The position numbers and the translations under genes are program-made. This document shows positions 1-34,484 of a stretch of 34,484 nucleotides of DNA, in pieces. The notes beneath the pieces are model-generated. The model did not search any database and was not told where the DNA came from. It saw nothing but the letters and a program-made list of their open reading frames with translations. Source of the DNA: Marsupella aquatica (lineage: Eukaryota > Plantae > Marchantiophyta); NCBI GenBank assembly GCA_973895155.1, contig CCZZQB010000056.1, positions 1 to 34,484 on the forward strand, given 5' to 3'. How positions within the stretch are numbered: the stretch's first letter is position 1; the number at the start of each line of letters is the position of its first letter.

Positions 1-702
1 CAACAAATATTGGGAGTGACAACATTACAATTCATTCGAAAACTTTTGAGTGCATTGTTTGTTGCTCATTCTCCATTTCAAAGAGGCGAGGGGAAAAAAG
101 CTTTTGACAGCTTCATGACAGGATATGGTCCTTGGAATAGCAGTTACATGGGTGGCCGTTTGACTTATTACACACACCAGAAGAAGATGAATACCATTTT
201 CGATGATTGCCTTGATGTCAAAGATTTTGAGAAGTGGATCGATAAATATTCACATATTGAACTTATGGATATTATATTGGGGCTTTATATGTGGTGGTGC
301 CCAGAGATGATAGAGTGTTTTTTGGAATACTCTCATCCGTACTTACTATCATCTGATGGTGACAAATATCATGGAAGTGAAGAGCAGATAGGGGAGAATG
401 TTAGACCTAGTACTTACCAATTATATATAAGTGAGGATTATTGTGTGCAAACACATGCTGATGATGATGCAACTGACTTCACCTTAGCGTATGCTAGTCA
501 TCCTGACCATTTCCTTTCAGCAATCGATTTTGTAATTCCAGAGTATGGAATTCGATTGCCAATTAGAGATGGAAATCTATTTGCATTTCGGAGCGATGTT
601 GTTCATGGTACAGGCTTTAGAATGAAAACATCGAATCCTGCATATGTTGGAGCTATTACCGTGAATAAAAACCTCAGCAGACTGATGCAAAAATTACATT
701 AA
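1..702 (+). CDS. TET/JBP-like Fe(II)-dependent dioxygenase, paralogue A (5' part lies outside the window)
   Basis: Frame 1 is open from base 1 (QQILGVTT...) to TAA at 700-702. HAD is at 454-462 and the distal His (VVHGT) at 604-606, in the beta-strand pattern YQLYISEDYCVQTHADDD...DFVIPEYGIRLPIRDGNLFAFRSDVVHGT. By hand count it is 44/95 identical, ungapped, to the C-terminus of 11671-13113. Confidence 0.75.
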   Translation, partial: QQILGVTTLQFIRKLLSALFVAHSPFQRGEGKKAFDSFMTGYGPWNSSYMGGRLTYYTHQKKMNTIFDDCLDVKDFEKWIDKYSHIELMDIILGLYMWWCPEMIECFLEYSHPYLLSSDGDKYHGSEEQIGENVRPSTYQLYISEDYCVQTHADDDATDFTLAYASHPDHFLSAIDFVIPEYGIRLPIRDGNLFAFRSDVVHGTGFRMKTSNPAYVGAITVNKNLSRLMQKLH

Positions 703-6315: not shown

Positions 6316-7246
6316 TATTGTTAGTATATAGGATTTATGTTGGCCCTATGAAGGTGGGTCAAAGGTGTGCATTGCGCCTAGCTAGGGTGCCTGTAAGACG
6401 CATGTGTAATGGTGGAATGCAATTCTATACATATTATTTTTGAGGCTAAGGGGGTGGGACAAGGTGGCTGCACAGAGCCTGTCATTATGTTATCAGTATG
6501 CTCATCATCTTTCCTCTCCAGCCTTCTGCTGCTATGCTTGGGAAGCCTGGGATTCCCTTTCGGGTTGTTATGTTGTTTTGGACTAAGATAATCCAATGAA
6601 GGTAAACGACAGAACAAGAAGATGATATTTCTAGGAGAAGCTCCGTGCATGCACAATGGGTTAAAGAGTGGAGATTCGGACACAGGAGGCCGGGGAGAAG
6701 GACCCTGAAAATCGGGAATCGGCAAAGGAAATGTAAACACAAGCAGCGTTGTGCTAGAGCAGCGGCCAGATTTGCTTCTTTAAATAGAAGGCAGTAGAAA
6801 GGGAAGGGGGGGATGTAATCAAATTCGCGGCAGCTTCATTCGGTGGGCCACATTGGCTGACAATTGTTTTTTGAAACCGCGGACTTGAGATTTAGTTGGC
6901 TTCAATGTGCTGGGCACTTAAGATCGACCTTGGAGCTTCAAAAGTAGAAATTGGGATGTATGAGCTGCAATTGCCAAAATGCGTATGAGCTGCAATTGCT
7001 AAACTGCGTCTTGTTGATTGATCACTCTACTATAGAGGCCGCCTTCAGTATATTGACCCCACGTCAGTACAGTGCTCGCTAAAATGATTAGAGACTACAA
7101 ACATATAAAGACAAATAATGCCACTCAATTGACGACAATCTTTATTTTTGGTTCTTTTGTTTGTACACCAACAACTGATTCATAGATCCACAATTTCATC
7201 ATTATTGTAATGCAAGGTACACGGGCCGTACCAATCCGGCAGAAGT

Positions 7247-11670: not shown

Positions 11671-13113
11671 ATGGCAAAACGAAAGTTTTGGAAAGTGAAC
11701 AAACAAATGAAGGAAGATGGCAAATATGAGTATGAGAAAATGAAATTTGCAATGGACGTTTTCATTCAAATTTTTTCAGCGATCATGATATTGCATCCAC
11801 GTTCACAAAAGTTTGCCATGTTATTTCTTCTTCAAGAAGATAATATTTTTCAAGCATTTGTACAAAATGTATTGAATATTAAACATACTGTATCGAAAGC
11901 AATGATATATAATGCTTACTATAGATTTAAAGAAATTGGACCACCAAAAACCTTTACTTCTTGCGCATGGGAGAATATCTGTGATATTCTCGATCATCAT
12001 TATTCTTTAGATTCAGTACCCTATAGTATAAGAAAATACATCCATTTTCTTAGGTCATCTACCTATATTGAAGAGTGTGTAAAAAGAGAAAAAAATATGC
12101 TAGAGAAAAAAGAAATGGTGTTTGAAAAAATTATTTCCCAATTTTGGTGGGGAAATGTGAATCCAATGGAATTAGTGCAAGGATTTTGGGGAAGAGTTGA
12201 TGATGAAGGTGAATGTTTTTATCGCTTAGAATTAGAAAAAACATTACAAATACTTTCTAGAAGAAAAAACAAAGGGAAAGAAATTGAAATTGAAGAGGCA
12301 CCTATATATAGGGAGCTTCCAATTTCTTACGTTGAAATCCAAAAAACAAAACAGGTTACGGAGATCTATGATAAAATCTCAAGTGAGCTAGTGGGTATCC
12401 ATATTCGCCCTAAAGATGTTCATAAATCTTTTACTATATTGATACGAACTTATCTTAAAGATCTTTTTTGTGCTCATCCAAGTTCAAAAAGATCTAAAAC
12501 TAGAGCATCCTATATGAGTGAAATGGTGGGGTTCGGTCCATTTCACCATACATGGACACCTGGAAAAAATGTTACATCTTTCTACACTCATAGTAATAAG
12601 TTAGTAAAAGCTTCAAAACCTTTAAAAGATTTTGGTAGATTTATTGATCGATTTGCACATGGGGCTGTGGTAGAAATTTTAATGTCTATGTGGTTTAGAT
12701 ATTATCCTACGTTATTACATACTTTTCTTAGATGTTGTAACCCTTACTTAGAAACTTCCCAATATATTAAGGAAGGTGTTGAGATACCATTTTTTGATAA
12801 GCACATGAAGAAGGGACCTCCTGCTTATCAACTATTCATTACTAGAGATTATTGTTCACGTTTTCATGTGGACAATGATAGGACAGAGTGGACACTAGCA
12901 TATACTAGTCACCCTGATGAACATATTTCACCAGTTGATTTTGTATTTGCCAAACATGGATTTATATTACCTTTGCATAATGGTGATTTATTTGCATTCA
13001 AAGGCAAACATCTCCATGGTATGGCTTTTAGAAAACCAACAGAAAATCCTGCATATATTGCAGCTTTAGTTATGAATAGTGGCTTAGGACAATTATTAAA
13101 TAGAATAGAGTAA
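11671..13113 (+). CDS. TET/JBP-like Fe(II)-dependent dioxygenase, paralogue B (480 aa)
   Basis: Intact ORF. H399-V-D401 is at 12865-12873 and H449 at 13015-13017. The 50-residue His-to-His spacing matches Naegleria Tet1 and trypanosome JBP1. It also has the DFVF..HG..LPLHNGDLFAF strand pattern and an upstream MVGFGP motif shared with paralogue A (MTGYGP). Confidence 0.78.
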   Translation: MAKRKFWKVNKQMKEDGKYEYEKMKFAMDVFIQIFSAIMILHPRSQKFAMLFLLQEDNIFQAFVQNVLNIKHTVSKAMIYNAYYRFKEIGPPKTFTSCAWENICDILDHHYSLDSVPYSIRKYIHFLRSSTYIEECVKREKNMLEKKEMVFEKIISQFWWGNVNPMELVQGFWGRVDDEGECFYRLELEKTLQILSRRKNKGKEIEIEEAPIYRELPISYVEIQKTKQVTEIYDKISSELVGIHIRPKDVHKSFTILIRTYLKDLFCAHPSSKRSKTRASYMSEMVGFGPFHHTWTPGKNVTSFYTHSNKLVKASKPLKDFGRFIDRFAHGAVVEILMSMWFRYYPTLLHTFLRCCNPYLETSQYIKEGVEIPFFDKHMKKGPPAYQLFITRDYCSRFHVDNDRTEWTLAYTSHPDEHISPVDFVFAKHGFILPLHNGDLFAFKGKHLHGMAFRKPTENPAYIAALVMNSGLGQLLNRIE

Positions 13114-15385: not shown

Positions 15386-16721
15386 CCCTTGCTCTGGGCA
15401 CTGCGGCTGAGACAAAGCAGGCTTAAGGATGAAGTCGGTGATGATCTCCAGAATGAAGGATTGCCTGTCTTTACCAGCGGGTAGAATGGCCCCGAGATGC
15501 CCATGATCCCTGAAGATAGCCTGAGACAATACCCTGCACAGATTCCAACCGCTATTTGACCGCCAATGTAGAATGGCACCTGTGGTGTACAGCATTGCAA
15601 TTGACCCCTGGGTTTAGTGCAATCCATCATCTGTTGTTGATTTGACTTGATCTCGATCCTCTACGACCCCGTACCCAACTTCCACTAAAGAATATGCTTG
15701 ATGGAAAGATTGCTTATCTAGGCAAGCATTCTGGCAAAAGCACTCACATCTTTCCAGGGAAAATGCCGCACAGTTGCAAAGGCAACGGTGACCGAAGGAT
15801 TCAAGTGTGCACCTGAAATGTGACCCACTGCATATATCATGTTCATGACAACAATCCCAAAAGATAAAGACATGCCCACATGCGTCACGGCTCCATTGAT
15901 CGAGCTTCGCATCCACTACCGCAGATCCACAATCAGTGAACACCAGGATGAAAGTAGCAATGATTTCTGCTCCAACCTGCTTCAATACAAGGATTTCTCC
16001 TGGTTAGCTGGTGAGATTGGCCGTTGGCATTGTTCTCCTCAAGGGATGTGGTCTTCACTCACTTATTGCATTGACCCCATTGAGGATGTCTACGTTCAGA
16101 TTCATTTCGTTCGTATAAGCTTCAAAGGAATGTTATTTAGCTTCCCAACAGCAATACTGCGGACAGTATCACAAGCTCCCAAGTATTAATCGGGATTAAT
16201 TACAAGGACTTATGTGAGGACTGGGTAGAGGGGTCCATGACATTCATTTGAAACTTTTAAAAAAGCCTGTAGTAGTCCTCACCGAGAAGTTCAGAGCGAG
16301 TGCTTTCAATGCAGCATGCAAGCCAAAAAAGATTAATGTGCGAGGAAGAGGTTCCAAGATGTGGTAATTGCCAAAAAGATGAGAGATCTTGAGAAACTAT
16401 GCTACTACAAAAACAAGCTAGCATAGTACAGAGATGAAATTTATCAGTGTGCAACCGGTAGTAGGAACTTACCTTTCGCATAAGACATGTATATGGCAAT
16501 TTCAAGGATCCCAAATATCCACACCCTGGTTGTTCGTCTGCGAGAGGCATATCGACGGTCTGGTCAAGGGGAGAATTCTCAAATCGCTGGCTCAATGACG
16601 GATGTTTTGCTGCAGCAGGAGGAACGTCAGTTGGAACACGGGTATCGTTCCCCAACACATAATGGTCCTTGGCTTGCAGTTTTGCTCTTCCTGCCATCTG
16701 GTCGTTCGAATGATCTGCCAT
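15386..16721 (-). pseudogene. NIP: NIP (nodulin-26-like intrinsic protein) aquaporin pseudogene: exons 16721-16473, 15976-15748 and 15579 to about 15386
   Basis: Exon 1 is MADHSND...YTCLMRK|gtaagt. Exon 2 is cag|VGAEIIATFILVF..., then a frameshift near 15903, then GHISGAHLNPSVTVAFATVRHFPWKD|gtgagt. Exon 3 is cag|VPFYIGGQ..., then a frameshift, then LPAGKDRQSFILEII. Both introns are phase 0 at the usual NIP positions. The exons with the second NPA box were not found. Confidence 0.9.
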
Positions 16722-17229: not shown

Positions 17230-17263
17230 GACCCCAGTTGCCACCATGATTTCACAACCCTTC
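17230..17263 (-). repeat. 34-bp exact copy of helicase coding sequence (18959-18992)
   Basis: GACCCCAGTTGCCACCATGATTTCACAACCCTTC is identical at both loci and encodes KGCEIMVATGV (around helicase motif V). Confidence 0.9.
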
Positions 17264-17911
17264 TATATTCCCAACCTCTGTCAGCCCTTGCACTCTCTAG
17301 CTCCATTTGGGACCCTTTTTGAAAAGTGGGAACAAAGATTGAAGACTACTTCTGCCCCCCTTGGGGCCTCTCTCCTCGACCAGTGAGAAGAAGGACAAGA
17401 CAAAGTTTAGGGTGGAGAATGAATACTGCACATCAAAGCACCGAGAGGGGGGGGGGGGAACGGAGCAGAGAAATAAACTCAGTGATTTAGTTTTCACAGG
17501 CCTGCCAAGGCAAGATGCATGAAACAAGCTCTCTAATACCATGATGAATTTTGAATACTTTACTCAACTTGATCATCCCACGTAAAGTTAACAAGAAATA
17601 GCTTTGCCCCAAACTGACTCCTAAGTCACAAAATAGGAGTAGGAAATAATCTGGGTCTAACAAAGCATATCCTATTTAAACTTCAAACAGCTAGAGAGAG
17701 CTGACCTGCATGCCAATGTGATCTACATTAAGAAACCGAAGCTAAAGTATGGATCTCTCCCCTGAAACTTTCCCACCGAACACCATACTTCCATCTAAGT
17801 AGTCTGATATTCATTTCACCCTTCATCTCCTGAACTTCACTTTTGAAATCTTCCAAGTAATTTACCACACTGTCCGGCCTCTATAAGAATTCTTCTCAAT
17901 TCTCTGATTGA

Positions 17912-20900
17912 TCACCGAAATTCAGGATACTTGATCCTCACAATGGTTGCTACAAGACGCATAAAATTGTTGCCCAGAGCCTCAGGACTTGTAGACACAA
18001 CCCATTCACACAGCTCCTGGTCACTTTTCCCTTTGATTTCAGGAATTGCTCGGAATAAATCGCTCTGTATGTTATCAAATCGCCATGCCTTCCACACAAA
18101 AAGCCGCAATCTCTCTCCTGATTCATCTTCACACTGATCTCCATACAGCCCTTCATGAAATCTCATCCCACTAGGCTGGTGTGGGAAGTGACACTTGAAA
18201 CAAGTGTCTGGTCGAGAAGGAAACTTGTTATCGCAATTTGCACGGTTGTGTGTTCCTAGACACTTCACACATCGTCCCCGTACATAAGGACATTGCAAAA
18301 TACCATGAGGAACACTCTTTGAGAGGGGACTCCAACACATCAAGCACTTTTTCCTATCCCCAGCAAATTTACGGATGATACAAATCTTATTCATGGCTTC
18401 GTCAATTCTTTGTTTGATGAGTGTTGGTCGAGCTCTTGCCACAACCGTGGTTGTGGTTCCTTTGCCTTGGGATGATCCGAGTGATGATGCTGGTGTTGTT
18501 CTTTCACCTGGTGCTGTAACCCTAACACTCTGTCCTCCTTGTATGTTTTGGGAGATGCTCCCCTGAGATACAATTTCAACCACTTCTGACCTAGCTTGTG
18601 ATAATTCTTCGGCCTCATATTCCATTGGTAGTTCCTGATTGTCTGCTGCTTGGGAGCATATGTCACAAGGAATTGCATCCGGGATGAGGTAACACATCTG
18701 TGGCTTACCATCAACGCTAGCATGTAGTGCAAAGCGACGACACATTTTTGTCTCCTCAATCCATTTGTTTGGAATCTTGAAGTTGGAGTCCATCCTCAAG
18801 GCCTCATTGCGGTAGCTGGAGTTAGAAACAACAGTGCTTATTGCTAATAAACCATCACGCCCAGCTCGGCCAGATTCCTGATGAAATTGCTCAAAGGACC
18901 TGAAATTACCTCTGTGAATTACAAGTCTGATTGACTTGTAATTATAGCCAGAACCAATGACCCCAGTTGCCACCATGATTTCACAACCCTTCGACTCCCA
19001 CTTCTTCAAGGTTTTCACGGTGTCTGCTGTGCTACATCCTGCATGCAAAAATGTATAGCACAAGTTCCTGGCTTCGAGTAGCTTTGCCATCTCTTGGACT
19101 TCATCTCTTGTTAGGCAATAGACAATGGCCCGGTCATGAACCAGGCTAGATCTCTTCCAATCTTGAAGCTGTCTAACTATTTCTCCATCCATGTCAGGCA
19201 CTTCCACAACCATGTATCGGATGTTTGGCCTAACAGTAGAAGAACGAACCCAATGTAATCTTGAACCCAAAGTCAGTTCGATATCAGATTGTTGTGTGGG
19301 TGGTAATGTCGCTGTTAATCCTATAATTTGACAGGGAACTTTCATTAGAGAAATCAGATTTCTCATTTTTGGACGGAAATGACACTGTAGTGTATGAATC
19401 TCATCAAAAACAATCGAATGCAATCTTTGTGTAGCTTGCAAGTGGTTTGCAAAGACACCAAATGTATCTGAATCAGCTGCAGTCTCGATAGATACAAAAA
19501 CAATTGCAGGTGTTACTCCTATCCCGAGTGCAAATCCACTTGTAAACACAGTGTGACCAATTCCTGCTTTTCTGCATTCAGATAAGTGACCCGATATGAG
19601 AGATTTGAATGGGACTACCACAATCACTGTTTTGTCCATCAATGTGGAAGGGGCCATGAAAATCAATGACTTTCCTGTTCCAGTGGGAAGTACAGTTACA
19701 AAATCCACAGTGTTTTCAATAGCCAAAGCAACAGAGATTGCTTGTTCAGTTGACCTCCACCTTTTGTGACCCAACTTGTGTAGAGCTATGGAAGCTCTTA
19801 TACTTGTGTCGTGACAGATGTGCAGTGCCGAATCAACATCTCCCACAACTGATGTTGATGGTTCTCCATAGGCAGGGCAATAAACAACCCTTGTCTTGCT
19901 TGGAACATGATCAATTTCAAGCTCAATGTCATGACGTGGACGTAGAACAGTAGTGGTTCTTGGAAAAGGATCTAGTGTGACTTCCCTGCAACCTGTTGTT
20001 GAGCTATCCAGATGAATCAATCTTGGGGACTTATCCGAAAGATTAAGCAATGCATGCCACTTATCTGTAAATATTCGGAATGCTCTCAAGAGATGTCCAT
20101 CAATAGCTCTTAAATCTTTTACACTTTGAGCATAATGATGTCCCATTGTAGCTGTTGTATGTCCACCTGCCACATCTACAATATCATCAAGATCTTGAGT
20201 GCGTTGGTCTCGAATCTTTTCTGAAAAAAATGCTGCTAGGTGTCGGTATTCTGAAAGCCCGAATGTGACTCCACAACGCTTAAAGAAATTGTTGTGTATG
20301 CTCTTGGAAAGATCATGTGCATCTTGCTTTTTATCCATATCAACGAACCAACAATCATCATAATTACGGGCAACCTCCTTTCCCCATATTTTCTGTGCAA
20401 CATAAGATTGTGTAGGCCTCACCAAACAAAAGTATACCAGAAACAGAGTTCTTAAAGAACTTGGAAGAAACCGTATAAGTGGTTTCATTGGAGCACCTGT
20501 ATTTGCACCTTTATGATAGGTTTGAAAGAGCGCTATTGTATGATGCTCTAACAATTTTGTTGTTGGATCATCATCTGGGCCTGCTGTTGCCCAATAAAAT
20601 GACCTCTCGCTTGTGGCTGTGTTGCGAATCAAGAAACTGTTGTACTCTTCGCCCCTTGCTGGTAGACCGGCAGTGAAATGTATAAGCAGATTCAATTTTT
20701 CTTGTAAATCAGAGCAAGCAGTCATCCACTTATAAAGTGTGATATCATTCCAAATGACATCATTTCGATCTGTCCGCCCGAGAATAAAGTGTCCTCTAAT
20801 CTTAGGATCAACAAACAAGTGTGTTAGTAGATCGAGGCCATGTTGCTGAAGAATCCGGTTGCGAGGATCTATGACAAAGTTGTACCCAACTTCTGTGTTG

Positions 20901-22873
20901 TTGACATCGTCGTAAATAGCACGACTCTCCTTAAGTAATTTGTCAACCCAATCTGTTCGGAGACCAAGAAGCACATCACAATTTAAAATTGAGTGGGCTT
21001 CTTGAATAATAGCATGCACCATATCTCGAAAATTGTCGATTGTAATAGATTCACCATCAACTAGACATGCTGTATTATTGGCATTCAATGGTACTAGTCT
21101 TGGCCATACTGGAGTCCCTGCAGTAATCCTATTTGCCAAGCGCAGAGATTGCGATACAATAGTAAATGGAGTAGGTAGTGCTATGTCACTTAAATATTGA
21201 AGAAGTCGATCAACTTCTTCATTAAGAATGGTGCTTGGGTTTTTATGCCAAAAACATTGTGCAAGGTGCATCAAAATGGTCACCCTAGCCCAATATTTGA
21301 GTATCGCCATTGGTTGTGTAAGATGACGAACATGCCAAAATGAATACTCTTCTGCTTCTGGACTGTGGCCAACTTTTATGAGTGAATGTAAAATAAGAAA
21401 CCGAGTGAAAATACAGTTCGCTGCTCTTCCTGCTTCAAGTGTTGCAGGCATCTTTGGAGTCCAAAGATGAATCAACACATTATGTAGAACAGCTAAATCA
21501 ACATTGTCAATAGAATTGTCATCTAATTCATTGAGTTGACTCATGAATTTTTGAAGAGCAATTTCCATTTCTTCTCTGTTTGTTTGAAAAACATGAATGT
21601 CCGAACTAAGCTCATTAGAAGATGATCGAAGCAAGCAGAGAATGAATTCTGTGATTATATCACAGTACCTACTCCTTGATGATTTTGAGTTCAATTGATT
21701 GAATCCCACTGCAACATCATCATTGATATTTGTCTTCTCCACTAGTCTTCTCAATCTGTAATCCACCTCTTTAAGAACCAAATCTTGTACATTGTTCATG
21801 TAGATAGTCACCACTTGACTGACATATGAGAGTGGAGATTTGCCCTGCTTTGGTGGTGGGAGCATCTGTGCTTTCACCTGCAAAAATGGTACCCCTTTTG
21901 GCATGAATTGGGCCGCAAGCTCATGCCATTTAGACTGTGCTAGCCATGGAGTTAGCTCAGCAATTGGAGGTAGAAGTTCTAACCGCAAAGACTGAAAATG
22001 GTCATCAAACTCCTTTGTGATTATAGCCCTCAAACTTTTAGATTGCAAGTGACAGTCATCCCCATCGAGATTGAGATTGTGATGTTGAACACCAAAGTAT
22101 TTGAGGCCTATAACACGATCTGAGAGGATTTGAACTTGGCATTCACTCTTCACATTGACATAGGACAACTCAGGATGTTTTCTCAAACGATGATTGGACA
22201 TTGACCTTTTCTCCCCACAATAGTAGATGCATTGTTTGCAAGAAAAGCCGTGTCGAATGACAACACCTGGTACTGGAGAAAGCAATGCAGCTGGTGGATC
22301 TCTTGTATATGGTAATATGGATGTATCATCCATGCTTGTAAAAGAGAACTGTTGTAAGCTCCTCAATAGTTGATGACTGTCGTAGTCTGATGCTATTCGA
22401 TGACACCTTGATTTCTCCCGTTGATGCTTTTGAACATGATGAATGATATTGATATTTTCATTGTATATGAGTACCGAATGACACTCTATACATACAAGGA
22501 AAACCAATTCCTCATGACGAACAACGCAGAGATTAACACTTCTCAAGATCTCTGGTGTACCAGAATGATCTGGTGTAATGCACAATCCTTCATTAACCGC
22601 CAAGTCGTGTGGATCAACAAATCTTTCGACTTGATTAACATGGATTGTGTCATAGTGTCGGCGAAGACTATCGCCACGTGTGTAATACTGAGAACACATA
22701 TTATCGGGGCATGCGAACATCCCATTTTCAGACTTGTGGAGGATCTCCACAGTGCCATCGCAATGCTTGAATTTGAACGTCATCCTGTGCTCAAAACGTT
22801 TGTGAGCATCTCTTGCTCTTGCTGATTGAAAAATCTGCTCACACGCACTACATGGAAAAATGGTTGTCTCCAT
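17912..22873 (-). CDS. Telomere-linked-helicase-like protein: C2H2 + DUF3505-like Zn region + tyrosine-recombinase-like domain + RecQ-family helicase + C-terminal Zn knuckles (1653 aa)
   Basis: Intact, uninterrupted ORF. Helicase motifs are LPTGTGKS (K1068), VVVPFKSL, FDEIH (1156-1160), LTATLPP, VATGVIGSG and HQESGRAGRDG, plus the RecQ Zn motif CRR...C...CDIC. N-terminal C2H2 fingers are CSAC..H...H and CPDNMC..H...H. DUF3505-like motifs are LVCIEC...HVQKH and GFSCKQC...H...H...CQVQ...YFGV. The central region has TAGLPARGEE, YHK, SEYRH and GGHT...HHY. Confidence 0.88.
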   Translation of the reverse strand: METTIFPCSACEQIFQSARARDAHKRFEHRMTFKFKHCDGTVEILHKSENGMFACPDNMCSQYYTRGDSLRRHYDTIHVNQVERFVDPHDLAVNEGLCITPDHSGTPEILRSVNLCVVRHEELVFLVCIECHSVLIYNENINIIHHVQKHQREKSRCHRIASDYDSHQLLRSLQQFSFTSMDDTSILPYTRDPPAALLSPVPGVVIRHGFSCKQCIYYCGEKRSMSNHRLRKHPELSYVNVKSECQVQILSDRVIGLKYFGVQHHNLNLDGDDCHLQSKSLRAIITKEFDDHFQSLRLELLPPIAELTPWLAQSKWHELAAQFMPKGVPFLQVKAQMLPPPKQGKSPLSYVSQVVTIYMNNVQDLVLKEVDYRLRRLVEKTNINDDVAVGFNQLNSKSSRSRYCDIITEFILCLLRSSSNELSSDIHVFQTNREEMEIALQKFMSQLNELDDNSIDNVDLAVLHNVLIHLWTPKMPATLEAGRAANCIFTRFLILHSLIKVGHSPEAEEYSFWHVRHLTQPMAILKYWARVTILMHLAQCFWHKNPSTILNEEVDRLLQYLSDIALPTPFTIVSQSLRLANRITAGTPVWPRLVPLNANNTACLVDGESITIDNFRDMVHAIIQEAHSILNCDVLLGLRTDWVDKLLKESRAIYDDVNNTEVGYNFVIDPRNRILQQHGLDLLTHLFVDPKIRGHFILGRTDRNDVIWNDITLYKWMTACSDLQEKLNLLIHFTAGLPARGEEYNSFLIRNTATSERSFYWATAGPDDDPTTKLLEHHTIALFQTYHKGANTGAPMKPLIRFLPSSLRTLFLVYFCLVRPTQSYVAQKIWGKEVARNYDDCWFVDMDKKQDAHDLSKSIHNNFFKRCGVTFGLSEYRHLAAFFSEKIRDQRTQDLDDIVDVAGGHTTATMGHHYAQSVKDLRAIDGHLLRAFRIFTDKWHALLNLSDKSPRLIHLDSSTTGCREVTLDPFPRTTTVLRPRHDIELEIDHVPSKTRVVYCPAYGEPSTSVVGDVDSALHICHDTSIRASIALHKLGHKRWRSTEQAISVALAIENTVDFVTVLPTGTGKSLIFMAPSTLMDKTVIVVVPFKSLISGHLSECRKAGIGHTVFTSGFALGIGVTPAIVFVSIETAADSDTFGVFANHLQATQRLHSIVFDEIHTLQCHFRPKMRNLISLMKVPCQIIGLTATLPPTQQSDIELTLGSRLHWVRSSTVRPNIRYMVVEVPDMDGEIVRQLQDWKRSSLVHDRAIVYCLTRDEVQEMAKLLEARNLCYTFLHAGCSTADTVKTLKKWESKGCEIMVATGVIGSGYNYKSIRLVIHRGNFRSFEQFHQESGRAGRDGLLAISTVVSNSSYRNEALRMDSNFKIPNKWIEETKMCRRFALHASVDGKPQMCYLIPDAIPCDICSQAADNQELPMEYEAEELSQARSEVVEIVSQGSISQNIQGGQSVRVTAPGERTTPASSLGSSQGKGTTTTVVARARPTLIKQRIDEAMNKICIIRKFAGDRKKCLMCWSPLSKSVPHGILQCPYVRGRCVKCLGTHNRANCDNKFPSRPDTCFKCHFPHQPSGMRFHEGLYGDQCEDESGERLRLFVWKAWRFDNIQSDLFRAIPEIKGKSDQELCEWVVSTSPEALGNNFMRLVATIVRIKYPEFR

Positions 22874-23599
22874 CGATCCTACACATCAATGTCACAAGCT
22901 CGTGCCATAAATCGCCATGTACTATCGGGAATAGATTACAAGAAGCGCAGGAATAGATTACAGGAAGCTCATGCAAGTGTTCTTTGTCTCTAGTATCTAC
23001 CAAGCTACTGAACTCTCAAGCATAGTTATAATTGAGCTTGCGCTTGAGTTCTGATCATGATGTTACAAGGTAGTCTATTGGAGTTCAGTTCTCTGTAAAA
23101 AATTCAGAGCAATGTAATAAACTAAAACCGTAAAGATTTGGAGTCTGAAGACATCAATGTAAAGCTAATAAATGTGTGCACAAAAATAGATAATCATTGC
23201 ATGGCCAGCTATGCAGTCAACCCCCAGAGCACAACTGACAGCTACATGCCCAATGCATTTTGCATACATATATAGATTCAAAATCATAATCCCATGCATA
23301 TATTCGCATTTGTTAAGAGAATTTAAGGAATTATGTCCTTCATGAATTAAAGCTTGTCCCAATAGATTACTTTTATTTAATTTACCTGACAAAATATTAT
23401 GGGGCTTGGAAGCTTGTAGAATGATTCTGTTCAATTCCCAAAGGTAGATTATCGCAGTTCAACTTGCCGCCGACATTTGCAAAGTGACTAGCTGCAACCA
23501 CTGTGTAATGCGATACATGTGGGCAACCACTGTATAATGTGATGTGGCAACTCTACCATCTAATGAAGACAAAATGCTTGAACTAAGGACATCAATGTT

Positions 23600-25070
23600 T
23601 GGTTGTAGATTGGGTTAGGAAATGTGGGTTGTGGCATGGGTTTAGGGTCTTATGTTGGGAGTTGAGAAAGACTGGAGTTACAAAATTTGGTGTGGTGTTG
23701 GGGCTGAGGGGGTTGGGAGTTGTGTGTTGGGGATTGAGGGGTTGTGGGTTCAAGGGGAAGTTGTGTCTTGGGTTGGGTAGGTTGAGAGTTGTATGTTGGG
23801 GAGCTTGGTTGCAGATTGGGTTAGGAAATTTGGGTTGTGGCATGGGTTGGGGGAGATGTGTTGGGGGTTGAGAAAGTCTGGAGTTAGGGAGTTAATTTGT
23901 TGTAGAGTTGGGTGTTGGGGGTTAAGGGATTCATTTGGGGAGTTGTGTCTTGGGTTGGGTAGGTTGAGAATTCTGTGTTGGGAGTTGAGTAAGTTGGGGA
24001 GTTTGGTTGTAGGTTAGGTTAGGAAATGTGGGTTGTGGCATGGGTTGGGGGAGATGTGTTGGGGGTTGAGAAAGTTTGGAGTTAGGGAGTTAATTTGTTG
24101 TAGAGTTGGGTGTTGGGGGTTGAGGGATTCATTTGGGGAGTTGTGTCTTGGGTTGGGTAGGTTGAGAGATTTGTGTTGGGAGTTAACACAGTTTGGAGTT
24201 ACAAAATTTGGTGTTGTGTTGGGGTGTGAGGGGGTTGGGAGTTGTGTGTTGGGGATTGAGGGGTGTTGGGGATTGTTGGGTGTTGGGGGTTGAGGGATTG
24301 GAAGTTGTGTCTTGGGTTGGGTAGATAGATAGTTGTATGTTGGGGGTTAAGGGAGTTGGGGAGTTATGTGTTTATCGGTTGAAGGAGTTTGGAGTTTGGT
24401 TGTGGGTGGGGGTTGACATTGTGGGTTGGGGGAGTCGTGGGTTGGGGATTGAGGGGTTGTGGGTTCAAGGGGAAGTTGTGTCTTGGGTTGGGTAGGTTGA
24501 GAGTTGTGTGTTGGGAGTTGAGTGAGTTGGGGAGTTTGGTTGTGGGTTGTGGCATGGGTTGGGGGAGATGTGTTGGGGGTTGAGAAAGTCTGGAGTTAGG
24601 GATTTAATTTGTTGTAGAGTTGGGTGTTGGGGGTTGAGGGATTCATTTGGGGAGTTGTGTCTTGGGTTGGGTAGGTTGAGAGATTTATGTTGGGAGTTGA
24701 GAAAGTTTGGAGTTACAAAATTTGGTGTAGTGTTGGGGGGCTGAGGGGGTTGGGAGTTGTGTGTTGGGGATTAAGGGGTTGTGGGTTCAAGGGGAAGTTG
24801 TGTCTTGGGTTGGGTAGGTTGAGAGTTGTGTGTTGGGGGTTGAGTGAGTTGGGGATTTAATTTGTTGTAGAGTTGGGTGTTGGGGGTTCAGGGATTGGAA
24901 GTTGTGTCTTGGGTTGGGTAGGTAGACAGTTGTATGTTGGGGGTTGAGGGAGTTGGGGAGTTATGTGTTGGAGGTTGAAGGAGTTTGGAGTTTGGTTGTG
25001 GGTGGGGGTTGACATTGTGGGTTGGGGGAGTTGTGGGTTGGGAGTTGCCGGGGAAGTTGTTTGTTGGGAT
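23600..25070 (+). repeat. G/T-rich modular minisatellite with telomere-like strand bias
   Basis: The 20-mer TTGTGTCTTGGGTTGGGTAG occurs at 23761, 23943, 24141, 24305, 24476, 24655, 24798 and 24902 (spacing 104-198 bp), mixed with other recurring modules. The plus strand has very few C. Confidence 0.92.
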
Positions 25071-26030: not shown

Positions 26031-26130
26031 CTAAACCCTAAACCCTAAACTGATGGACCACTTCGAAAACAAGGGGCGAGAACTCGGGGCCAAACTCGGG
26101 GCGAGAAACCCTAAACCCTAAACCCTAAAG
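26031..26130 (-). repeat. Two short interstitial telomeric tracts in inverted orientation (CCCTAAA on + strand)
   Basis: TAAACCCTAAACCCTAAAC at 26031-26049 and AAACCCTAAACCCTAAACCCTAAA at about 26106-26129. Confidence 0.9.
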
Positions 26131-26273
26131 ATCCAAAATCCCACATTCCAAGTGTGAGGGCCGCCTCCTGGTCCTGATCCTAAGTCTAAACTTGGAGATC
26201 AGCGCCCCCCTGCCCACTCACGCCTCCTACCTCCACGTCCGCCCTTCCTAAAAGGAACGGCGCCCTTGCACCA

Positions 26274-28091
26274 TCACGACACCGGTGGTGGATCCTCAAT
26301 GGACGCCCCCAACGCTCCCTCCGCAACCACTGCCGTTGGTCCGTCCTCTGACAGATTACCTGCCTCTGACCGAGTCAACTTTTCATTGGCCTGACTGGGC
26401 CCACCCTCGGCTTCGGCTTCGGCTTCAGCTTCGGCCACGGCCTCCAACACGGCTACAGTCTCCCCGGCCTGCTCAAGAGGTGGATCTGGGATACCGGCCT
26501 CATTATTGAGAAGTTCGGCTTGGGCCGCGCCATCCCCACCTTTGGTGATAGTGGGATCTACTACCGCATTCATGCTGGAGGTTGGTACCGGTTTTACTAC
26601 AGCTTGAGGGGTCGAATAACCTCCGGACCCCGAAGGTTTCCGCTTCTTCTTCTTCACTACCTCTATAGCCGGTTCCTTCCCCTTGCCGCCAACGTCCGGC
26701 ACCGGGCCGTGTGTCATGGCTGGTCCTTCGGCAATTACCACCCCTAGTAACTGGTTTGCCCCAATGGGAGATGGACCTGATGCAGCTAAGCATTTAAATA
26801 CTGCGGCTTGTTTCTTCAGCCGCTCTGTTTGGTTGTCGGCCCGCCGCTGTAGGTTCTCCATCTTCCTCGTGACTTCCTCCAACTCCTCCTGGGTCTCATC
26901 CAGGTCCTTACGTGCCTCCTCCAGCTTGTTCTTGGCTTCCTCCAATTCCCTGTGGGCTTCCTCCAATTCCTTCTTGGTGGTAGCCCTCTCCTCCTGGGTT
27001 GCTCTTAGCTCCTTGTCGAGCTCCGCTACGACCTCAGACTCCATGTTATTCATCTTGGCATAAGTCTGGTCGAGCTGGGCGTCCTTCTCCCGCAGGTTGG
27101 CCTTGAAGCTGGCCGTCAAGGACGCAAGCTCCTGCTGTAGCGCAATAATCCCTTGATAGGATTTCCCTAACTCAGCCTCCTTCTGCTCAAGGGCTCTGTG
27201 GATGACCTCGAGCTCCCCCTTCAACGCCCTCTCCCTTCTCTGAGTCTCCGCCGTGACCCGGTTATTGGCTGCTATATGGGCCTCCTCTGCGTCTCTCAGC
27301 TCCTTCTTCCACTTCTCCCTCTCCTTGATTGCGTCGGCCAATGCTCCCTGGGTCTAAGTCAGTTTATCCTTGATAATCTGATTATCAGCCTGCGCGGTAT
27401 CCAACTGCCCCTGCATGATGTTCAGCTCATGCCGCTTAATCCGCAGTTCATCTTGGGCTTTCTTGGCCACCCTTAGATCTTCAATCTCGGCTTCCATCCT
27501 CCTAAGCCGCCGGATGACCTCGTCCTTCTTGCTTCTCTCTAAAGCCACCGCTTCTTCTAATTGGTGCTTCTCTAACTGCTCCCTCTGGAAAAAGGGTCCT
27601 ACCTCCAACTCCTCCCCAAAGATGCTGAGCGCAAGTTCCCCACACATCTCACCATAATCCATGGCTCTATTTTTAGCGTAGGTGGAGTAATTAGAAGTGA
27701 TCGGCATTGCCCATCGCGGCCTCTGCTCCCAAGCCATCTTGCGGATCTCTTCAATCGTGGCTAGAGGTTTGCTTCCTTTTTTGGCTAGCCGCCTGATGTC
27801 CTCCGGCCAATCTCCTCCTGGCAAATCCTTTTCCCTAGCCAGGGCTGCCTTTTCTGCTTCCCTAAGTCGCTCCTGAAATTTCTATGCCGTCTGCTTTATG
27901 CCGTCAAATCTCGGGGGAGCAACATTTGGTGGGGGAGACTTGGGAGGGTGTGGACGAGGTATATTTGAAGTTGGCAGAACTAGGAGACCATTTGTACTGT
28001 TGCTATATGGCTTAGTTGTATATTTTGGAGTGCACTGCTTGTATGGATCTCTAATTTTAATGGAGACACGAGCAGCGCTGATTTGTCTCAA
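26274..28091 (-). pseudogene. Coiled-coil protein reading frame (about 606 codons) broken by two in-frame TAG stops; probably transposon-associated
   Basis: ORFs 28091-27882, 27824-27354 and 27341-26274 share one frame and are separated only by TAG at 27884-27882 and 27356-27354. Strong heptads (ELEEAHRELEEAKNKLEEARKDLDETQEEL), a KKKKRK basic patch and an acidic low-complexity tail. Confidence 0.7.
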
Positions 28092-32610: not shown

Positions 32611-34484
32611 AGGGTTTAGGGTTTAGGGTTTAGGGTTTTTAGGGGTTTAGGGTTTAGGGTTTAGGGTTTAGTTTAGGGTTTAGGGTTTAGGGTTTAGGGT
32701 TTAGGGTTTAGGGTTTTTTAGGGTTTAGGGTTTAGGGTTTAGGGTTTAGGGTTTAGGGTTTAGGGTTTAGGGTTTAGGGTTTAGGGTTTAGGGTTTAGGG
32801 TTTAGGGTTTAGGGTTTAGGGTTTAGGGTTTAGGGTTTAGGGTTTAGGGTTTAGGGTTTAGGGTTTAGGGTTTAGGGTTTAGGGTTTAGGGTTTAGGGTT
32901 TAGGGTTTAGGGTTTAGGGTTTAGGGTTTAGGGTTTAGGGTTTAGGGTTTAGGGTTTAGGGTTTTAGTTTTAGGGTTTAGGGTTTAGGGTTTAGGGTTTA
33001 GGGTTTATGGGTTTAGGGTTTAGGGTTTAGGGTTTAGGGTTTAGGGTTTAGGGTTTAGGGTTTAGGGTTTAGGGTTTAGGGTTTAGGGTTTAGGGTTTAG
33101 GGTTTAGGGTTTAGGGTTTAGGGTTTAGGGTTTAGGGTTTAGGGTTTAGGGTTTAGGGTTTAGGGTTTAGGGTTTAGGGTTTAGGGTTTAGGGTTTAGGG
33201 TTTAGGGTTTAGGGTTTAGGGTTTAGGGTTTAGGGTTTAGGGTTTAGGGTTTAGGGTTTAGGGTTTAGGGTTTAGGGTTTAGGGTTTAGGGTTTAGGGTT
33301 TAGGGTTTAGGGTTTAGGGTTTAGGGTTTAGGGTTTAGGGTTTAGGGTTTAGGGTTTAGGGTTTAGGGTTTAGGGTTTAGGGTTTAGGGTTTAGGGTTTA
33401 GGGTTTAGGGTTTAGGGTTTAGGGTTTAGGGTTTAGGGTTTAGGGTTTAGGGTTTAGGGTTTAGGGTTTAGGGTTTAGGGTTTAGGGTTTAGGGTTTAGG
33501 GTTTAGGGTTTAGGGTTTAGGGTTTAGGGTTTAGGGTTTAGGGTTTAGGGTTTAGGGTTTAGGGTTTAGGGTTTAGGGTTTAGGGTTTAGGGTTTAGGGT
33601 TTAGGGTTTAGGGTTTAGGGTTTAGGGTTTAGGGTTTAGGGTTTAGGGTTTAGGGTTTAGGGTTTAGGGTTTAGGGTTTAGGGTTTAGGGTTTAGGGTTT
33701 AGGGTTTAGGGTTTAGGGTTTAGGGTTTAGGGTTTAGGGTTTAGGGTTTAGGGTTTAGGGTTTAGGGTTTAGGGTTTAGGGTTTAGGGTTTAGGGTTTAG
33801 GGTTTAGGGTTTAGGGTTTAGGGTTTAGGGTTTAGGGTTTAGGGTTTAGGGTTTAGGGTTTAGGGTTTAGGGTTTAGGGTTTAGGGTTTAGGGTTTAGGG
33901 TTTAGGGTTTAGGGTTTAGGGTTTAGGGTTTAGGGTTTAGGGTTTAGGGTTTAGGGTTTAGGGTTTAGGGTTTAGGGTTTAGGGTTTAGGGTTTAGGGTT
34001 TAGGGTTTAGGGTTTAGGGTTTAGGGTTTAGGGTTTAGGGTTTAGGGTTTAGGGTTTAGGGTTTAGGGTTTAGGGTTTAGGGTTTAGGGTTTAGGGTTTA
34101 GGGTTTAGGGTTTAGGGTTTAGGGTTTAGGGTTTAGGGTTTAGGGTTTAGGGTTTAGGGTTTAGGGTTTAGGGTTTAGGGTTTAGGGTTTAGGGTTTAGG
34201 GTTTAGGGTTTAGGGTTTAGGGTTTAGGGTTTAGGGTTTAGGGTTTAGGGTTTAGGGTTTAGGGTTTAGGGTTTAGGGTTTAGGGTTTAGGGTTTAGGGT
34301 TTAGGGTTTAGGGTTTAGGGTTTAGGGTTTAGGGTTTAGGGTTTAGGGTTTAGGGTTTAGGGTTTAGGGTTTAGGGTTTAGGGTTTAGGGTTTAGGGTTT
34401 AGGGTTTAGGGTTTAGGGTTTAGGGTTTAGGGTTTAGGGTTTAGGGTTTAGGGTTTAGGGTTTAGGGTTTAGGGTTTAGGGTTT
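32611..34484 (+). repeat. Terminal telomere, (TTTAGGG)n, about 267 units
   Basis: Continuous TTTAGGG to the end of the window with the G-strand on +. Variant units occur only in the proximal about 450 bp. Confidence 0.99.

Follow-up and report, generated by a model that had tools for sequence, protein, structure and literature searches.

A telomere-linked helicase with a predicted tyrosine-recombinase fold beside a plant-type telomere in a liverwort assembly

INTRODUCTION

Telomere-linked helicases (TLHs) have so far been reported only from fungi and, outside them, from a single choanoflagellate, Monosiga (10.1101/2024.02.27.582403). The family is defined by a pair of N-terminal C2H2 zinc fingers, a ‘TLH domain’ upstream of the helicase and the motifs of RecQ helicases. 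The two fingers follow the spacings Cx2-3Cx8-14Hx3-5H and Cx2-5Cx11-16Hx4-5H, and the TLH domain is named as a region of ~250 residues lying directly upstream of the helicase, with no mention of a recombinase (10.1101/2024.02.27.582403). The same order of parts, C2H2 fingers, TLH domain and RecQ helicase, is shared by the fungal TLHs (Schizosaccharomyces pombe Tlh1 and Tlh2, Magnaporthe TLH1, Ustilago UTASa and the Fusarium proteins), the Monosiga TLH and the product of a gene that we describe here from a liverwort assembly. This gene lies in a 34,484-nt stretch of Marsupella aquatica DNA (assembly GCA_973895155.1, contig CCZZQB010000056.1, positions 1–34,484 of the forward strand), which was analysed as a whole and is referred to below as the window. 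Within it, an intact open reading frame (ORF) of 1653 amino acids (aa) occupies positions 17912–22873 of the minus strand.

We conclude that this ORF encodes a telomere-linked helicase of the family to which S. pombe Tlh1 and Tlh2 belong. On balance, we favour the view that it is an intact copy within a resident, multi-copy, selfish or semi-autonomous subtelomeric element of foreign ancestry in a liverwort-like plant genome. A search of the accessible literature found no paper linking TLHs to plants or to tyrosine recombinases.

RESULTS

An intact ORF facing a plant-type telomere

The ORF starts with ATG and continues for 1653 codons with no internal stop and no intron, as the initial annotation of this DNA had proposed. 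At a GC content of 42%, the chance of a stop-free run of this length is roughly (61/64)^1653, far beyond random expectation. The window ends in a plant-type telomere, an array of 263 perfect TTTAGGG units that spans 1.87 kb (32611–34484, plus strand) and reaches the last nucleotide. This array lies 9.7 kb from the start of the ORF, a distance that refers to this single copy and agrees with the ~10 kb given in the initial annotation. The 5′ end of the ORF faces the telomere, so that the gene is transcribed away from it. Both the GC content of the ORF (0.42) and its GC content at third codon positions (GC3, 0.35) resemble those of the surrounding sequence. An exact look-up of the protein returned no database record.

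All three defining features of TLHs are found in the predicted protein. Two N-terminal C2H2 motifs were located by a pattern search at aa 8–29 (Cx2Cx12Hx4H) and aa 55–78 (Cx4Cx12Hx4H; 22640–22852, minus strand), and both match the published spacing patterns. They are followed by a TLH domain (aa 590–960) and a RecQ-type helicase core (aa 1030–1410). Because of these three features and its position beside the telomere, we file the ORF as a TLH rather than as a plant-type RecQ. Fungal TLHs are likewise encoded by long, intronless ORFs beside telomeres and occur in more than one copy. Unlike them, the window gene has a plant host with TTTAGGG telomeres, and it lies 9.7 kb from the array as compared with 1 kb in the one telomere-linked relative found, an environmental sequence described below.

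The TLH domain is predicted to adopt a tyrosine-recombinase fold

The TLH domain of the window protein (19994–21106, minus strand) is predicted to adopt the fold of tyrosine recombinases. The model, computed with an alignment of 70 relatives, has a predicted local distance difference test (pLDDT) score of 89 and a predicted template modelling (pTM) score of 0.90. This alignment was needed: aa 602–1011 folded without it reached a pLDDT of 37. Among reviewed UniProt models, the best match is to aa 714–1080 of S. pombe Tlh1 (E 8.5e-14, template modelling (TM) score 0.71), followed by Tlh2 (TM 0.68), and the middle domains of both superpose on the window model. The next matches are eight Saccharomyces cerevisiae Y′-Help1 copies (E 2.5e-7 to 1.8e-5, TM 0.54–0.65), and XerC, XerD, XerA and Flp stand below these at E 0.15–0.5. 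Y′-Help1 is likewise encoded in a subtelomeric multi-copy unit with a long helicase ORF; its match is weaker than those of Tlh1 and Tlh2, sequence identity is 13–16%, and the likeness is one of domain fold.

Solved structures point the same way. The predicted domain was used as the query against 48,161 chains in a search independent of Foldseek, and 31 of the 32 best matches are tyrosine recombinases, type IB topoisomerases, Flp, Ndc10, protelomerases or integrase-like phage regulators. XerA is matched with a Z score of 11.7, XerH with 10.5 and Cre with 9.5–10, and clearly unrelated folds appear from Z 4.3. Across the tyrosine recombinases (XerA, XerH and XerD, Cre, phage and integron integrases, and Flp), the catalytic-domain fold shared with the model corresponds to Z 8–11.7. 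The remaining match among the 32 is a complex containing QRICH1 (9hjt_H, Z 5.6). QRICH1 is described as Crypton-derived, which would fit the recombinase interpretation.

Five candidate catalytic residues were matched to the positions of the recombinase active site by order and spacing: R740 (20654–20656), K788 (20510–20512), R877 (20243–20245), H905 (20159–20161) and Y914 (20132–20134), all on the minus strand. R740, K788 and a further residue, E743, are invariant among the 70 relatives, and R877, H905 and Y914 are at least 90% conserved. Together, these six residues fill half of the 12 best-conserved columns among the 371 of the domain in the 70 sequences, and in 20 full-length relatives they are the residues outside the helicase that are invariant or nearly so. 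Their order is that typical of a tyrosine recombinase, with K788 placed between two strands as in those enzymes. The order of these candidates, Arg, Lys, Arg, His, Tyr, is the usual one of tyrosine recombinases and Cryptons; in the window protein, by contrast, a RecQ helicase and zinc fingers are joined to the domain. To our knowledge, no Crypton with such a combination of recombinase, RecQ helicase and zinc fingers has been described.

Several observations weigh against the recombinase interpretation, which rests on a predicted structure and on residue conservation. The classical HxxR box lacks a conserved first His, and a Ser lies three residues before R877. Sequence similarity to known recombinases falls below the reach of Pfam, whose Phage_integrase family touches only 1 of the 70 domain members, and a profile of the middle domain found nothing among the sequences of solved structures. 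One UniProt entry, an AlphaFold cluster representative in the fold cluster, carries the automatic name ‘Tyr recombinase domain-containing protein’; the recombinase idea may therefore already exist in databases, though in no paper that we found.

A RecQ-type helicase core without the usual C-terminal domains

The helicase core (aa 1030–1410; 18644–19786, minus strand) is of the RecQ type within superfamily 2 and contains motifs 0 to VI followed by a four-Cys zinc motif. Pfam identifies a DEAD domain at aa 1044–1194 (E 1e-16) and Helicase_C at aa 1246–1341 (E 3e-15). The best matches of the core to solved structures all belong to the RecQ family, led by BLM (1.3e-28) and Escherichia coli RecQ (9e-28) and continuing through RECQ1, WRN, RECQ5 and RECQ4 down to 1e-14; DEAD-box proteins follow at 8e-10 or worse. 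Motif 0 (Q1044), the GxGKS lysine (K1068), the DEIH box (1157–1160) and the QESGRAGRDG motif (1332–1341) are invariant or nearly so in 20–25 relatives. The zinc-motif cysteines behind the second lobe (Cys1378, Cys1394, Cys1403 and Cys1406) are conserved in at least 90% of relatives.

The initial annotation described a complete RecQ core with its zinc motif and no recognizable HRDC or winged-helix tail. The core, its four cysteines and the missing tail were all borne out; a Pfam match to RecQ_Zn_bind was not found, and neither HRDC nor the winged-helix RQC domain is detected by Pfam in the protein. The canonical RecQs (E. coli RecQ, BLM, WRN, RECQ1, RECQ4 and RECQ5) share with the window protein two RecA-like lobes, motifs 0 to VI and the four-Cys motif that follows. 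In contrast to them, the window protein lacks RQC and HRDC, has about 1000 extra N-terminal residues that include the recombinase-like domain, and belongs to a separate clade. Canonical RecQs, such as plant RECQ1–5, have a C-terminal region made of a zinc-binding part and a winged helix, often accompanied by HRDC, of which the window protein retains only the four-Cys motif.

This separation is seen in a helicase-only tree, where the window protein falls in a TLH clade apart from canonical RecQs with a Shimodaira–Hasegawa-like approximate likelihood ratio test (SH-aLRT) support of 99. The root is formed by 12 canonical RecQs, all or nearly all bacterial and none of them a plant RECQ. On this RecQ rooting, the recombinase-bearing proteins form a single clade. 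The earlier proposal that the layout is that of fungal TLHs and not of an ordinary plant RecQ is upheld by the three defining features, by Tlh1 and Tlh2 as best reviewed matches and by this split, in a tree without plant RECQs.

Further zinc-binding regions and the C-terminal domain

The C2H2 fingers, DUF3505-like region and C-terminal knuckles of the initial annotation could all be confirmed. Between the N-terminal fingers and the TLH domain lies a zinc region matching OrsD/DUF3505 (PF12013) at aa 120–233 (22175–22516, minus strand; E 3e-7, 31.3 bits against a cut-off of 26.6). It includes two further C2H2-like motifs at aa 128–150 and 212–233, which brings the total to four, and its residues C128, C131, H146, C212, C215 and H228 are kept in relatives. 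The helicase core is followed by a linker rich in Ser, Thr and Gln (aa 1410–1505; 18359–18646, minus strand) that is unconserved among relatives. The protein ends in a C-terminal domain (aa 1505–1653; 17915–18361, minus strand) with a conserved Trp1624 and three Cys/His knuckles, located by pattern search at aa 1510–1528, 1535–1547 and 1558–1581. Seven Cys/His positions of the knuckles are at least 90% conserved in 20 relatives.

Relatives of the window protein

In a word-indexed protein search, two proteins only match most of the length of the window protein. One is from the liverwort Calypogeia fissa (58% identity) and the other from Steccherinum (Agaricomycetes; 24%), which also contains OrsD. 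The remaining matches are canonical RecQs over ~20% of the query at less than 100 bits, as against 176–1200 bits for family members. A HMMER search of 1.84 billion representatives with aa 454–1653 recovered 412 representatives at E ≤1e-30. Within the best 150 matches and their cluster members, a local hidden Markov model (HMM) found the complete region between zinc fingers and helicase in 114 proteins.

Outside the liverworts, seven relatives have a clear organism of origin and all are fungi: Steccherinum, Ustilago, Schizosaccharomyces japonicus, Ceratobasidium, Agaricus, Pleurotus and Fomitopsis. They include an Ustilago sp. protein with 33 cluster members, Agaricus bisporus with 11 on several large contigs, Pleurotus eryngii and Fomitopsis serialis. 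The Ustilago member was found with a trimmed alignment; the search with the full-length alignment was dominated by words from the variable N-terminus. The S. japonicus and Ustilago proteins are sequence relatives across both the recombinase-like and the helicase parts. Identity of the window protein to relatives outside the liverworts is 20–38%, and the nearest ESM Atlas clusters are from Basidiomycota and Ascomycota.

Other relatives are environmental or unlabelled. On the contigs of the nearest of these (P0121, P0122, P0270, P0273 and P0127), neighbouring ORFs gave no match in Pfam. Two tandem copies of one relative from soil-type metagenomes (the 90% cluster of P0126 and P0273; 38% GC) lie on one contig (L007; 1173–5822 and 7564–9963). 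On another (L008), this relative lies 1 kb from a contig end of (TTAGGG)8 (6832–6879) and is transcribed toward it, an orientation opposite to that of the window copy. Linkage to a telomere is thus seen in the nearest outgroup too, in an organism whose repeat differs. Two relatives (P0135 and P0287) are labelled by NCBI as metagenome-assembled ‘bacterium’ and ‘Gloeomargaritales cyanobacterium’, on contigs of 5.5–6.4 kb; these labels are probably wrong, the contigs being eukaryotic and misbinned.

Phylogenetic position and probable foreign ancestry

The window and Calypogeia proteins pair in both trees (support 100 and 99), and in both the liverwort pair falls inside a well-supported seven-member clade together with five environmental sequences. 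An approximately unbiased (AU) test rejects placement of the liverwort pair as sister to all other TLHs (p-AU 0.002). We consider an ancestry foreign to plants most likely, the gene having been gained horizontally from a fungus or a comparable organism. A fungus-like donor offers the simplest account of the distribution, and the AU test leaves the rooting open.

Two points bear against this view. The five nearest relatives are environmental and the seven-member clade as a whole is not rejected as sister to all other TLHs (p-AU 0.31). On these sequences, a fungal donor or a position nested inside fungi is accordingly not demonstrated. The same points would suit ancient vertical inheritance, whereby TLHs were present in early eukaryotes, were retained in fungi, choanoflagellates and liverworts, and were lost almost everywhere else with no transfer. 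A non-fungal TLH is known in Monosiga, the seven-member clade may be basal on the RecQ rooting, and its environmental members could be other non-fungal eukaryotes. Vertical descent would, however, require very many independent losses across plants, and Calypogeia is the sole plant among organism-named relatives in searches of billions of proteins. It is also at odds with the free trees, which put the seven-member clade several nodes inside the family, and with the linkage of a member of the nearest clade to a TTAGGG rather than a TTTAGGG telomere. We regard vertical descent as improbable, and foreign ancestry remains our preferred reading.

Residence in the plant genome

Short reads from other samples place the gene in the same flanking DNA. 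Four runs, covering two organism labels and two studies, contain 90–95% of the sampled words of the ORF. Read contigs were compared with the window over positions 17400–23399, and short-read contigs of runs X1 and X2 (two labels, two studies) span both the stop-codon and the start-codon borders of the ORF. Depth on the ORF is 182 in X1 and 115 in X2, and depth on the flanks is 164–216 and 74–131, respectively. The contigs thus cross both borders at flank-like depth and give no sign of the chimeric join that the initial annotation had named as a concern.

A homologue is also present in an independently assembled liverwort. The C. fissa copy lies on a 284-kb contig, 8 kb from an MCM gene, and covers aa 3–1653 of the window protein. 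It is a full-length pseudogene with one frameshift and five in-frame stops. DNA similarity between the window and the Calypogeia locus, as measured by blastn, is confined to the ORF and absent from the flanks.

These data bear directly on the possibility that a gene of a plant-associated fungus was misjoined to plant DNA. Liverworts host fungi, and all other clearly named relatives are fungal. The immediate flanks of the ORF, moreover, contain no clearly plant gene apart from the telomere repeat when neighbouring ORFs are compared with Pfam, a point that also counts against our own reading. Such a misjoin is nevertheless difficult to reconcile with contigs from two labels and two studies that cross both borders unbroken at like depth, with a window that runs gap-free into a TTTAGGG telomere (fungi typically have TTAGGG), with GC and GC3 values like those of the surroundings, or with the decayed Calypogeia copy. 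Given the border-crossing contigs, the gap-free telomere, the GC match and the Calypogeia copy, we consider contamination or a chimeric join very unlikely and the TLH gene a resident of the plant genome.

Additional copies and the extent of the repeated unit

The X1 and X2 runs contain a second copy, ~10% diverged, which appears as low-depth contigs over 17772–17995, 18141–18446 and 23016–23399. Its homology to the 3′ flank (17772–17911, minus strand) ends at 17772, 140 nt past the stop codon, and this position is a candidate for the 3′ limit of the repeated unit. The 5′ flank (22874–23399, minus strand) is common to the second copy from 23016 to at least 23399, where homology reaches the end of the compared stretch. 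A perfect 34-nt direct copy of ORF positions 18959–18992 is found at 17230–17263 (minus strand), 650 nt beyond the stop codon. It is seen in the reads of three runs and as a graph branch in contigs, and may be what is left of a tandem copy since lost, or else a templated patch. No further TLH remnant was found in the window by tblastn or by a full-length HMM applied to six-frame pieces.

Coverage in a run with a third organism label (X5) is confined to ~17800 to 23000, that is, to the ORF ±100 nt. The run mixes short, near-identical contigs, some of them 151 nt long and fully identical, with others that match only islands of 50–150 nt around R740 and H905–Y914 and then diverge. This run could be RNA or could derive from a relative with the element elsewhere.

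The points that we count for element-like behaviour are the lack of introns, the ~10% diverged second copy, the decayed Calypogeia copy without flank similarity, and the environmental relatives found as a tandem pair (L007) or 1 kb away from a (TTAGGG)n end (L008). Others tell against a mobile element. Neither element termini nor a target-site duplication nor an empty site came to light, the extra copies observed here are low-depth variant contigs, and there is no transcription evidence, with no run identifiable as RNA. Over 4.4 kb, X1 and X2 differ from the window at five sites, three non-synonymous and two synonymous; this ratio gives no sign of purifying selection, and five sites are too few to test. 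The recent mobility or selection suggested by the initial annotation draws solely on the intact state of the ORF.

The gene could instead be a domesticated, stationary liverwort gene that selection keeps because its helicase, and possibly its recombinase, aids telomere replication or repair, with the other copies being ordinary subtelomeric duplicates. Its ORF is fully intact with every catalytic motif present, it lies at a chromosome end, element termini were not found, and fungal tlh and Y′-Help1 genes are reported to be induced upon telomerase failure. A conserved host function sits poorly, however, with the Calypogeia homologue, which is pseudogenized by six disruptions and lies in flanks dissimilar by blastn, and with a ratio of non-synonymous to synonymous differences between samples that shows no sign of constraint. 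The gene also has no introns, whereas the initial annotation calls plant RecQ genes intron-rich; diverged extra copies are present; and fungal family members behave as variable multi-copy subtelomeric repeats. We therefore consider a host gene doubtful and retain the reading of a subtelomeric element.

Other features of the window

Little else in the window can be assigned. Twenty other neighbouring ORFs gave no Pfam match, and the proposal that neighbouring host-derived genes are pseudogenes could not be confirmed; the sole trace found is a 26-residue stretch. This stretch (15908–15985, minus strand) opens a 123-aa ORF and is similar to the N-terminal end of NIP-type aquaporins, with Aquaporin NIP2-1 as best match (E 0.078). 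A plant gene may have decayed here; nothing else near the helicase looks plant-like.

Between the ORF and the telomere lies a G/T-rich minisatellite (23597–25052) that is nearly free of C (47% G, 2.7% C) and has the polarity of the telomere G strand. It comprises several nested repeat families with a weak 7-nt periodicity. A decayed telomere as its source is not supported: 7-mers resembling TTTAGGG are no commoner than in shuffles of the same composition. Short interstitial (CCCTAAA)2-3 tracts occur at 26036–26056 and 26109–26136 in the orientation opposite to the terminal array, just past the 3′ end of a coiled-coil ORF. This ORF (26274–27341, minus strand; 355 aa) adjoins a second one (27354–27824, minus strand; 156 aa). 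Both have GC (0.51–0.57) and GC3 (0.61–0.64) well above the surroundings. Their Pfam matches are to coiled coils only and below threshold, and the ESM Atlas gives a faint lead to plant Transposase_28 (score 0.84).

Two further intact ORFs, at 11671–13113 (plus strand, 480 aa) and 10–702 (plus strand, 230 aa), are 34.5% identical over 226 residues. Both have a C-terminus resembling 2-oxoglutarate/Fe(II) (2OG-Fe(II)) dioxygenases of the TET/JBP type and are blank in Pfam; the longer one has an unusually low GC content of 0.32. Their nearest ESM Atlas clusters are from Mucoromycota and Basidiomycota, some with Tet-like 2OG-FeII_Oxy_6 (0.91–0.92), and serve as a lead only. At the other loci examined, no dioxygenase was found beside the TLH genes.

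DISCUSSION

A model for the element

The architecture of the window protein suggests how such an element might operate. The zinc fingers would target the protein to subtelomeric DNA, which the recombinase-fold domain may break and reseal by way of a phosphotyrosine at Y914, as the predicted structure would allow. The RecQ-type 3′–5′ helicase would unwind or branch-migrate the intermediates. In this way, copies could spread or exchange between chromosome ends, and the unit would be maintained there in a Crypton-like manner. The element is probably selfish; we infer its mobility, its exchange between chromosome ends and its recombinase activity. Back-up telomere maintenance would be a possible by-product. 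Both Y′ elements and tlh genes have been reported as a telomere back-up in telomerase-deficient yeasts.

A bolder interpretation can be offered tentatively. The TLH domain may be an active tyrosine recombinase, and TLH and Y′ units may together constitute an unrecognized superfamily of DNA elements that combine a recombinase with a RecQ helicase and undergo insertion or exchange at chromosome ends. An element of this type would have passed to liverworts from fungi or a fungus-like donor, and its intact copies would there lie in the same subtelomeres as TET/JBP-like dioxygenase genes, for which the nearest look-alikes are likewise fungal.

Implications for the TLH family

The intact copy at a plant telomere and the decayed copy in Calypogeia extend the TLH family to land plants. 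Together they represent a candidate case of cross-kingdom transfer of a subtelomeric element between closely associated partners. The predicted recombinase fold and the family-wide set of Arg, Lys, Arg, His and Tyr residues would provide a concrete mechanism for TLH and Y′ units, which may be the relic of a mobile element or a living one.

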